From Dimorphilus gyrociliatus (Eukaryota > Animalia > Annelida): a DNA stretch of 64,000 bases. Where the stretch lies: NCBI GenBank assembly GCA_904063045.1, contig CAJFCJ010000019.1, positions 3,106,684-3,170,683 of the forward strand, read 5' to 3'. Of this stretch, positions 6,086 to 6,941 are shown in pieces. The notes below the pieces were generated by a model. The model did no database searches. It saw nothing but the letters and a program-made list of their open reading frames with translations, and had not been told where the DNA came from. Every line of letters begins with the position of its first letter. Position 1 is the stretch's first letter. Both the position numbers and the translations under genes were made by a program.

Positions 6086-6941
6086 ATGAGTAGTTCTAGT
6101 AATTTTTTTTGCCGCTCATTTTTCTCTCTCCAAAAATTGTTACCATACAAAAGAGGCAAACCAAGAGCATCGGAAGTTTTGACAAAGCATTTGGAGCAAG
6201 CTTCTTATCCTTTCTGGACATCTTTTGTTGTTCGACAGAAGGATGTGTTAAATGATCAATTCTCACTCTCAAATTTTAACTGGTGCATTGGACAGCATAA
6301 TTATCAAATTTTAAGAACTGGTTGTTATCCTTTCATCAAATATCACTGCTCCTCGGCGCCGGTAGAAGATCTATCTCAACATAATAAGCTATTTACGACT
6401 CTAAAAGCAATCAATCTAGGTTAGTTAAATATAATGGGAGTGATAGATGAATGGAGGGCTTTAATGGGTAATCCTCAAGAAACTAATAACAACAATCAAG
6501 ACTCAAAATCAGATTGCACAGAATGCCGCGTAATCGGAACTGTAGCATGCTCAGGAGCAGGATGTTACACACTTTGGTCAACTTTAGCAAAAGATATGAA
6601 GGGTGCATCCAGATCACTAAAAATTAGATATTATTCTTTCGGAACGTGCCTTTCTTTAACTTTTTTTACCTTAGCCATTTGCCGGGCTTTTGATTTGTCA
6701 ATGTTTAATGCTAAGAATAAAGATAAAACACCACTACAGATTCTTAATGAGGATATAAAATGGTTTAGGGAAAAAAAGTTTTTTAGTAAGGATTAATGTA
6801 AATTTTTATGCAGGCATTCCAACATTCGTCTATGGATTATCGATATACATGCTGATAAAATTCGAGGAAGAGATAAAAACCTCTAAGGGAATCGTAAAAA
6901 TCTACTTTTTAAATGAAGAAAACAGGCAGTCTCCTTTCTAA
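6086..6941 (+). CDS. C15orf61: C15orf61/DUF4528-family protein, 2 exons, 153 aa
   Basis: Exon 1 6086-6419 ([12 protein letters not shown]...WTSF...NDQF...[18 protein letters not shown]...KAINL) and exon 2 6814-6941 ([12 protein letters not shown]...KIYFLNEE...) join across intron 6420-6813 (gttagt...ttttatgcag, phase 1). The junction restores the family's NLGIPT..YGL sequence. Confidence 0.92.
6434..6796 (+). CDS. DMAC1: DMAC1/TMEM261-like (DUF4536) two-TM protein, 120 aa, intronless, nested in the C15orf61 intron on the same strand
   Basis: [22 protein letters not shown] resembles the CxxCR..G....GAG.Y..W signature I recall for DMAC1/DUF4536, followed by a second hydrophobic helix. The ATG has good Kozak context (ataATGG). 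Orthology versus family-level similarity is not resolved. Confidence 0.75.
   Translation: MGVIDEWRALMGNPQETNNNNQDSKSDCTECRVIGTVACSGAGCYTLWSTLAKDMKGASRSLKIRYYSFGTCLSLTFFTLAICRAFDLSMFNAKNKDKTPLQILNEDIKWFREKKFFSKD

Follow-up and report, generated by a model that had tools for sequence, protein, structure and literature searches.

How can two complete proteins be obtained from one short stretch of an animal genome, if the gene for one of them takes up nearly the whole intron that has to be removed to make the other? This question is raised by a locus of the annelid Dimorphilus gyrociliatus lying in a window of 64,000 nucleotides (nt) (assembly GCA_904063045.1, contig CAJFCJ010000019.1, positions 3,106,684 to 3,170,683 of the forward strand; positions below are those of this window, unless another contig is named). 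There, the only intron of C15orf61 holds, on the same strand, an open reading frame (ORF) that resembles the mitochondrial assembly factors DMAC1 and Dmo2. The comparison with a second species argues for a real, selectively maintained gene within an intron, with the guest filling an ancient phase-1 intron nearly to its splice sites, and we regard the anatomy and the conservation of the nested locus as solid, practically beyond doubt.

A nested gene kept in two species

The host gene was identified by its matches. Its exon 1 product alone scores 136.5 bits (E 5.8e-40) against the Pfam model PF15031 (DUF4528, C15orf61), for which the cut-off is 27, and the window protein is 53-66% identical to named C15orf61 homologues. 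The exon 2 product aligns with the C-termini of vertebrate, spider, and other homologues and shares their conserved ..IYFL.. tail. The donor reads AG/GTTAGT at 6420 and the acceptor TTTTATGCAG/G (AG at 6812-6813), and the spliced coding sequence would have 462 nt, giving 153 amino acids (aa) and a stop. The intron lies after ..NLG, a position shared across animals: in many species, ORF calls made on genomic contigs read through it and stop just beyond. It is taken to be ancient on these comparative grounds. The nested ORF covers 363 of its 394 nt (92%), starting 14 nt past the donor, which is 9 nt after the in-frame TAG that closes the C15orf61 frame if the intron is retained, and stopping 17 nt before the acceptor. 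This arrangement had been described in the first-pass annotation and all its coordinates were confirmed from the sequence, as was the remark that the intron is about six times the local modal size (published median of 66 bp, PMC7854359).

The same layout was found in a second species, represented by the Logan assemblies SRR23372228 and SRR23372216 (contigs L002 and L003, with L002 measuring 63.8 kb). The closest relative of the C15orf61 product (P0002) is 65% identical, has 112 aa, and ends exactly after ..NLG. In L002, an exon 1 of exactly 334 nt is followed by the donor G/GTTAGT with its in-frame TAG and, 8 nt later, by the ATG of a nested ORF of 121 codons, which ends in TAA and is followed by 19 nt ending in TTTTATGCAG/G. 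The intron has 398 nt, and exon 2, with 42 codons, is 67% identical to that of the window. The surroundings are kept in order and orientation as well, namely an alpha-kinase gene, COQ7, a small unknown gene, and, on the opposite strand, an Ank/fn3 gene.

The two nested proteins are 60% identical and 74% similar. Between the two species synonymous sites are saturated (proportion of synonymous differences, pS, 0.64-0.76), and thus the lineages are old. The ratio of nonsynonymous to synonymous substitution rates (omega) is approximately 0.21 for the nested ORF as a whole and 0.14 for residues 27-120, and the proportions of differences give a ratio (pN/pS) of 0.39 in the nested ORF, compared with 0.27 in C15orf61. 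For calibration, COQ7 is 79% and the small unknown gene 35% identical between the two contigs; the upstream intergenic DNA shows ~40% identity, and the intron aligns as coding sequence does. Taken as sequence evidence, the omega values point to purifying selection on the nested ORF, which the first pass had named as a test of its reality. By chance, 120 codons in a row without a stop would arise at the local base composition in about 1 of 10^4 cases (an estimate) and, given this rarity together with the 60% identity kept in the second species, the nested ORF is not a chance ORF.

Table 1. Features of the nested locus and assembled contigs of RNA-type runs that cover it (window positions, unless L002 is named)
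Feature	Positions	Strand	Remarks
C15orf61 exon 1	6086..6419	+	334 nt, 111 codons plus 1 nt; ATG at 6086
C15orf61 sole intron	6420..6813	+	394 nt, phase 1, after ..NLG
C15orf61 exon 2	6814..6941	+	42 codons plus stop
In-frame TAG, intron retained	6422..6424	+	closes the C15orf61 frame after 112 residues
Nested intronless gene, DMAC1/Dmo2-like (DUF4536)	6434..6796	+	120 aa plus stop
Likely branch-point/pyrimidine-tract region, containing the nested stop TAA (6794-6796)	6791..6813	+	GATTAAT..TTTTATGCAG in both species
Candidate upstream ORF	6036..6089	+	17 aa, not in frame with C15orf61; A at -3; its TGA shares bases with the C15orf61 ATG
Candidate poly(A) signal AGTAAA	6951..6956	+	L002 has AATAAA at the aligned place, 4870
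Contig of run X2	6081 to >7500		same organism label as the assembly; depth 38
Contig of run X5	6178 to >7500		second label, 2017; depth 184
Contigs of run X6	6023-6266, 6248-6613		coral metatranscriptome; low depth
Contig of run X7	6162-6685		marine metatranscriptome, 12 differences, probably another strain; low depth

The packing extends to the splicing signals, as the conserved GATTAAT..TTTTATGCAG stretch around the nested stop codon could serve as the branch-point region of the host intron, a role suggested by its position and motif.

Two putative mitochondrial proteins and the origin of the nesting

The nested ORF had been called DMAC1/DUF4536-like at first pass. This attribution stands on its relatives and on a Cx2C motif, and not on the Pfam model itself: PF15055 (DMAC1_Dmo2, formerly DUF4536) gives 19.2 bits (E 0.0014) for the window and 20.8 bits (E 0.00045) for L002, in both cases under the curated cut-off of 27, a statistical threshold for a model of 47 positions of which only 1-27 align with the nested ORF. 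When 1.8 billion cluster representatives were searched exhaustively with phmmer, ten relatives were returned at E <1e-3. They include the Capitella teleta protein R7TRP1, named 'DUF4536 domain-containing protein' (E 3e-9), a protein of Owenia fusiformis, and two proteins that themselves exceed the PF15055 cut-off, one from Solemya velum (28.5 bits) and an Armadillidium 'distal membrane-arm assembly complex protein 1-like' (46.8 bits). The feature neighbours of the nested ORF in the ESM Atlas are likewise DMAC1_Dmo2 clusters (score 0.93). In an alignment of 11 sequences, C28 and C31 (the Cx2C motif), G35, R84, and F91 do not vary. From residue 1 on, the N-terminus (MG..D..A) can be aligned with stand-alone orthologues, so that the start codon is fixed inside the intron, and hydropathy indicates two hydrophobic segments (33-52 and 64-92) after the Cx2C motif.

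A Cx2C motif with two transmembrane segments is the layout of Dmo2/Dbi1 and of human DMAC1 and, in two reports (bioRxiv 2023.06.12.544600; PMC11850723), yeast Dmo2/Dbi1, the DMAC1 homologue, is described as a Cx2C oxidoreductase and a chaperone for inner-membrane proteins. Human DMAC1 is associated with complex I assembly intermediates; the assembly or oxidation role has been reported for the human and yeast proteins only. By these similarities, the nested ORF is assigned to a divergent DMAC1/Dmo2-like protein. A second copy of DMAC1 elsewhere in the genome had been proposed as a check, and the exhaustive phmmer search contained no other DMAC1-like protein from the annotation of this assembly. 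The nested gene is probably the sole DMAC1-like gene of the genome, and if so it must be expressed.

Other searches with the nested sequence added little. A word-indexed homologue search found only the ORF itself, a profile of the nested family gave a chance HIG1 match (E 0.7) against the sequences of the PDB, and no match was obtained when the metagenome contigs of the Joint Genome Institute (JGI) were scanned with the nested-protein alignment. The Rfam scan of 5500-7500 contained no credible RNA family. An AlphaFold model based on the 11-sequence alignment shows a hairpin of helices 24-52 and 60-85 at low confidence (predicted local distance difference test, pLDDT, 60), and Foldseek comparison of this model with the Swiss-Prot models gave nothing reliable, all template modelling (TM) scores being <0.5; YDL157C, which we take to be yeast DMO2, appeared at rank 4 (E 0.68). 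Neither the model nor the structural matches are used as evidence here.

As for the host, its product has a basic N-terminus (six K/R and one D/E among the first 30 residues) and a single hydrophobic segment, by hydropathy at residues ~102-129, encoded mostly in exon 2. Since this segment straddles the splice junction, the form made from a retained intron would lack the membrane anchor, as had been stated at first pass. Human C15orf61 resides in the inner mitochondrial membrane, binds ATP synthase, and modulates its multimerisation, for which the name ATP5MM was proposed (PMC12919160), and it has also been described as a sub-stoichiometric ATP synthase interactor (bioRxiv 2026.05.29.728872); both the association and the location are reported for the human protein only. 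The earlier description of the locus as a pair of mitochondrial membrane proteins is therefore kept in corrected form, as a complex V regulator (PMC12919160; bioRxiv 2026.05.29.728872) together with an assembly factor of the DMAC1/Dmo2 type. By analogy with the characterized homologues, both partners would be small inner-membrane proteins of oxidative phosphorylation, for which co-regulation would be sensible.

Whether the nesting is conserved across animals was also asked at first pass, and the answer is divided: the layout holds in L002, and it is absent from Capitella, Owenia, a small-intron eukaryote (L004), a spider (L005), and a further contig, L010. The DMAC1-like genes of Capitella (L006) and Owenia (L009) are free-standing and have no C15orf61 closer than 10 kb. 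The homologous C15orf61 intron measures ~80 nt in L004, ~8 kb in the spider, and ~72 nt in L010, and none of the three contains DMAC1-like sequence. Thus, the nesting is derived and lineage-restricted, and the distribution places its origin within a dinophilid-like lineage. A profile search with C15orf61 exon 1 yielded only the relative in L002, and no third species with the nesting was found. Moreover, the DMAC1-like genes of Capitella and Owenia have one phase-1 intron each, in the same alignment column, which corresponds to nested residue 75; the nested copies must thus have lost an ancestral annelid intron, possibly by simple intron loss or by originating as a processed copy.

Some candidates for comparable loci were rejected. 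Truncated C15orf61 ORF calls in other lineages, considered as further nested loci, turned out to reflect ordinary short introns. A 1.2-kb JGI contig (L007, 35-1122) encodes a secreted-looking ORF of 177 aa and, 110 nt further on the same strand, a DMAC1-like ORF; it was dropped as a parallel bicistron, as the 177-aa ORF is unrelated to C15orf61 and the type of contig is unknown. Separately, a Fuseless-domain gene was noticed 7 kb from the DMAC1-like gene in Owenia (L009 18224-19637) and another 1.7 kb upstream of C15orf61 in L004 (1637-2158), and these neighbours may be the trace of an old linkage between the two genes that were later nested.

RNA evidence and the proposed route to the nested product

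The contigs of all four runs in Table 1 cross the donor (6419/6420) unspliced, and those of X2 and X5 also cross the acceptor (6813/6814). In X2, the depth is 128 over the neighbouring gene, falls to 0-5 over an AT-rich intergenic stretch, and reaches 38 at the locus; with this pattern and the intergenic hole, X2 behaves as RNA. The unspliced form thus exists and is probably the dominant one. The public gene calls of GCA_904063045.1 for 6086-6941 (L001 5653-6508) consist of the 120-aa nested ORF only, and no protein identical to the window C15orf61 was found in a collection of 5.8 billion proteins; the public annotation thus seems to have overlooked C15orf61. Unspliced transcript models, combined with a choice of the longest ORF, would lead to just such a call of the nested ORF without C15orf61. 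In the published description of the D. gyrociliatus genome, the median intron has 66 bp, longer introns are retained more often, and neither operons nor trans-splicing occur (PMC7854359). In such a genome, another route to the nested product is needed.

The intron leaves no space for a promoter ahead of the nested ATG or for a poly(A) signal behind its stop, which obliges the nested mRNA to begin upstream of the intron, in exon 1 or before it, and to run on past exon 2. We propose that C15orf61 and the nested gene form one transcription unit with one poly(A) site, for which AGTAAA is the candidate signal. Spliced RNA would give the full-length 153-aa C15orf61, and unspliced RNA would be the mRNA of the DMAC1-like protein, with exon 2 as its 3' untranslated region (UTR). 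On the latter, ribosomes would most likely pass the weak, perhaps upstream-ORF-covered ATG of C15orf61 and reach the strong nested ATG. On the unspliced RNA, neither stop is followed by an exon junction, and junction-dependent decay would thus not be expected. The shared promoter, the partition by splicing or retention, and the passage of ribosomes by leaky scanning or reinitiation are all steps that we infer.

Two observations concern the 3' side of the locus. The hexamer AATAAA occurs at 6716-6721 within the nested ORF (in the codons for K-N-K); since L002 does not share it, a use as poly(A) signal is improbable. On the minus strand, the convergent Ank/fn3 gene comes to within 107 nt of the C15orf61 stop (6941-7048), the RNA-type contigs fuse both genes, and their 3' UTRs probably abut or overlap.

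The idea of one promoter for both genes, put forward at first pass, is compatible with the contigs that join exon 1 to the nested ORF. The X5 contig, however, begins at 6178 inside exon 1 and leaves 6086-6177 uncovered, so that an internal start is possible. In a different arrangement, the two genes would overlap and be transcribed separately, with a start site for the nested gene in exon 1 or at the exon-intron border, only the 3' end being shared and the host transcripts being normally spliced. This would suit the high depth of the X5 contig, as well as the X2 contigs, which break at 6079-6080 with a rise in depth from 4.6 to 38.3, and own promoters are described for many nested genes of other animals (PMC11694760, PMC13309782). 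Even the scarcity of ATGs between 6178 and 6434, discussed below, is what a 5' UTR would show. Contig ends are, however, not start sites, and a coverage hole proves nothing; the ends at 6178 (X5) and 6079-6081 (X2, where a GTGT run occupies 6078-6081) could mark start sites or breaks at polymorphic or heterozygous positions. The contigs of X6 run from 6023 over the C15orf61 ATG into the nested ORF and that of X2 from 6081, and on visual inspection of the alignment the synonymous sites of exon 1 contain no obvious conserved block that could be a promoter. We therefore consider separate transcription unlikely, while giving it real weight.

For the shared transcript, the start codons are of interest. 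The C15orf61 ATG has a weak context in both the window and L002 (T at -3); a purine stands at -3 in most neighbouring genes and in the C15orf61 of the spider and of L010. The nested ATG has a strong context (A at -3, G at +4) in both species. In L002, the stretch from one start to the other is free of further ATGs (P 0.006 on shuffling, 0.07 on synonymous permutation), and in the window two intervening ATGs open short out-of-frame upstream ORFs (uORFs) that end by 6314. A weak first AUG, few or no AUGs between, and a strong second AUG form the pattern of leaky scanning, with weak statistics in the window. In addition, the candidate uORF of Table 1 has an analogue in L002 (3979-4017, 12 aa, A at -3, out of frame), which also overlaps the C15orf61 start; the window uORF lies in the 5' UTR only if transcription begins upstream of 6036, and an X6 contig extends from 6023. 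Judged from the sequence, these AUG and uORF features are suggestive of ribosomes bypassing the first cistron.

Alternatively, the shared unspliced RNA could be translated by termination and reinitiation, with the truncated 112-aa C15orf61 frame being read to its TAG and translation restarting 8-9 nt downstream. The conservation of this short spacing (9 nt in the window, 8 nt in L002) would fit, although such tight packing forces a short spacing anyway. In eukaryotes, reinitiation after so long an ORF (>100 codons) is normally very inefficient unless a dedicated RNA element is present, and it would also produce an anchorless, truncated C15orf61 in the same amount as the nested protein. We consider this route highly improbable.

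Several results weigh against the shared, spliced-or-retained transcript and have to be set beside it. The data are assembled contigs, which carry no per-isoform depth, strand, or read ends and from which minor forms are dropped. The part of the earlier splice-or-retain proposal that stands is the unspliced passage from exon 1 into the nested ORF; the spliced junction 6419^6814 is present in the contigs of none of the runs. The exact spliced junction is absent from the JGI metagenome contigs too, and for neither species does the protein collection contain the spliced 153-aa product. With no junction seen, splicing is deduced only from the conservation of exon 2 and of the splice sites. Carry-over of DNA is possible in the low-depth metatranscriptomes X6 and X7. 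In the window, ATGs are not significantly depleted (P 0.08 to 0.7), PF15055 scores the nested ORF under its cut-off, and the ambiguous contig ends described above count here as well. A T at donor position +3, which creates the TAG, could have been seen as an adaptation to nesting; L010 (875-960) has the same G/GTTAGT donor with in-frame TAG in its guest-free intron, which rules this out, and the GTTAGT/TAG donor would predate the nesting or be independent of it. Lastly, the X6 and X7 variants include eight synonymous and one nonsynonymous in exon 1, and two synonymous and four nonsynonymous in the nested ORF, where three of the four nonsynonymous ones fall into the variable N-terminal linker (codons 17-22).

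Some of these points would also suit another explanation, that the unspliced contigs are only pre-mRNA or DNA background, that the nested ORF, as a relic, is decaying or seldom used, and that the locus simply makes C15orf61. The putative status of its translation, its Pfam score under the cut-off, and the within-species variants (4 nonsynonymous to 2 synonymous) would speak for this. A relic would, however, hardly have stayed intact in two synonymous-saturated lineages with an omega of 0.14-0.21 and with its start, its CxxC, and both hydrophobic segments conserved. Moreover, it is apparently the only DMAC1-like gene in the annotated proteome, and the assemblies mainly follow the unspliced path (depths of 38 and 184). 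A relic is thus scarcely credible.

Altogether, the shared transcript that is either spliced or retained is the best-supported reading, and we hold it with moderate confidence. A more specific version, which we advance tentatively and would not yet call probable, is a conserved 'coding intron' switch with one promoter and one poly(A) site, in which the efficiency of splicing at a single intron would set the ratio of C15orf61, the ATP synthase modulator, to the DMAC1-type protein, both unrelated members of the oxidative phosphorylation system, and ribosomes bypass a deliberately weak, uORF-shadowed AUG.

Known systems and the meaning of the locus

The closest known arrangement is the cholinergic locus, in which VAChT lies in the first intron of ChAT (unc-17 and cha-1 in C. 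elegans). Both loci have a complete same-strand ORF in a host intron, which encodes a functionally related protein and is conserved, and in both RNA processing decides the product, at the present locus under the shared-transcript reading. In the cholinergic case, the intron is of kilobase size and the guest is reached through alternative splicing of a common 5' exon, through promoters of its own, or through both. The locus described here differs in that the guest takes up 92% of a 394-nt intron, no acceptor precedes its ORF, its mRNA is apparently the unspliced transcript, and the arrangement is found in one annelid lineage.

Retrogene guests, such as Mcts2 in H13 and others in surveys of mammalian host/nested pairs (PMC13309782, PMC11694760), are similar in being intronless copies in the intron of an unrelated host, with which they compete through RNA processing. 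Such guests bring a promoter and frequently a poly(A) site as well, the latter truncating the host transcript. The guest of the window lies in an intron without space for a promoter or poly(A) site and is apparently the only copy of its gene.

Bicistronic mRNAs read by leaky scanning or reinitiation are known as well, for instance MOCS2A/B, RPP14/HTD2, and the polycistronic genes of green algae. With those translated by leaky scanning, the window locus would share two complete ORFs on one capped RNA, a weak upstream AUG, a strong downstream AUG with few or no AUGs in the interval, and mitochondrial products. The difference is that splicing would take the downstream cistron out as an intron here, and must do so for the upstream one to be complete, which adds a further level of choice; the translation of both is putative. 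A coding intron for which the balance of splicing and retention sets the product ratio is also a feature of retroviruses, with their unspliced and spliced RNAs; the analogy is one of logic only, since the present case would be a cellular locus of two unrelated housekeeping-type genes, with no export element known.

Nested genes are common, and the guest usually has its own promoter and terminator in a roomy intron. The guest described here is apparently the only copy in the genome of a conserved mitochondrial assembly factor, in a layout that has outlived synonymous saturation. If the shared-transcript model is true, an unspliced pre-mRNA would be a functional mRNA in an animal cell, and a single splicing decision would allocate output between two mitochondrial inner-membrane proteins. 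The locus would then offer a compact system for studying the export and translation of intron-retaining RNA together with leaky scanning past a full-length upstream ORF. It would also show one way in which an animal genome without operons or trans-splicing can pack its genes, and comparable loci elsewhere may be mis-annotated, as C15orf61 appears to have been missed here.

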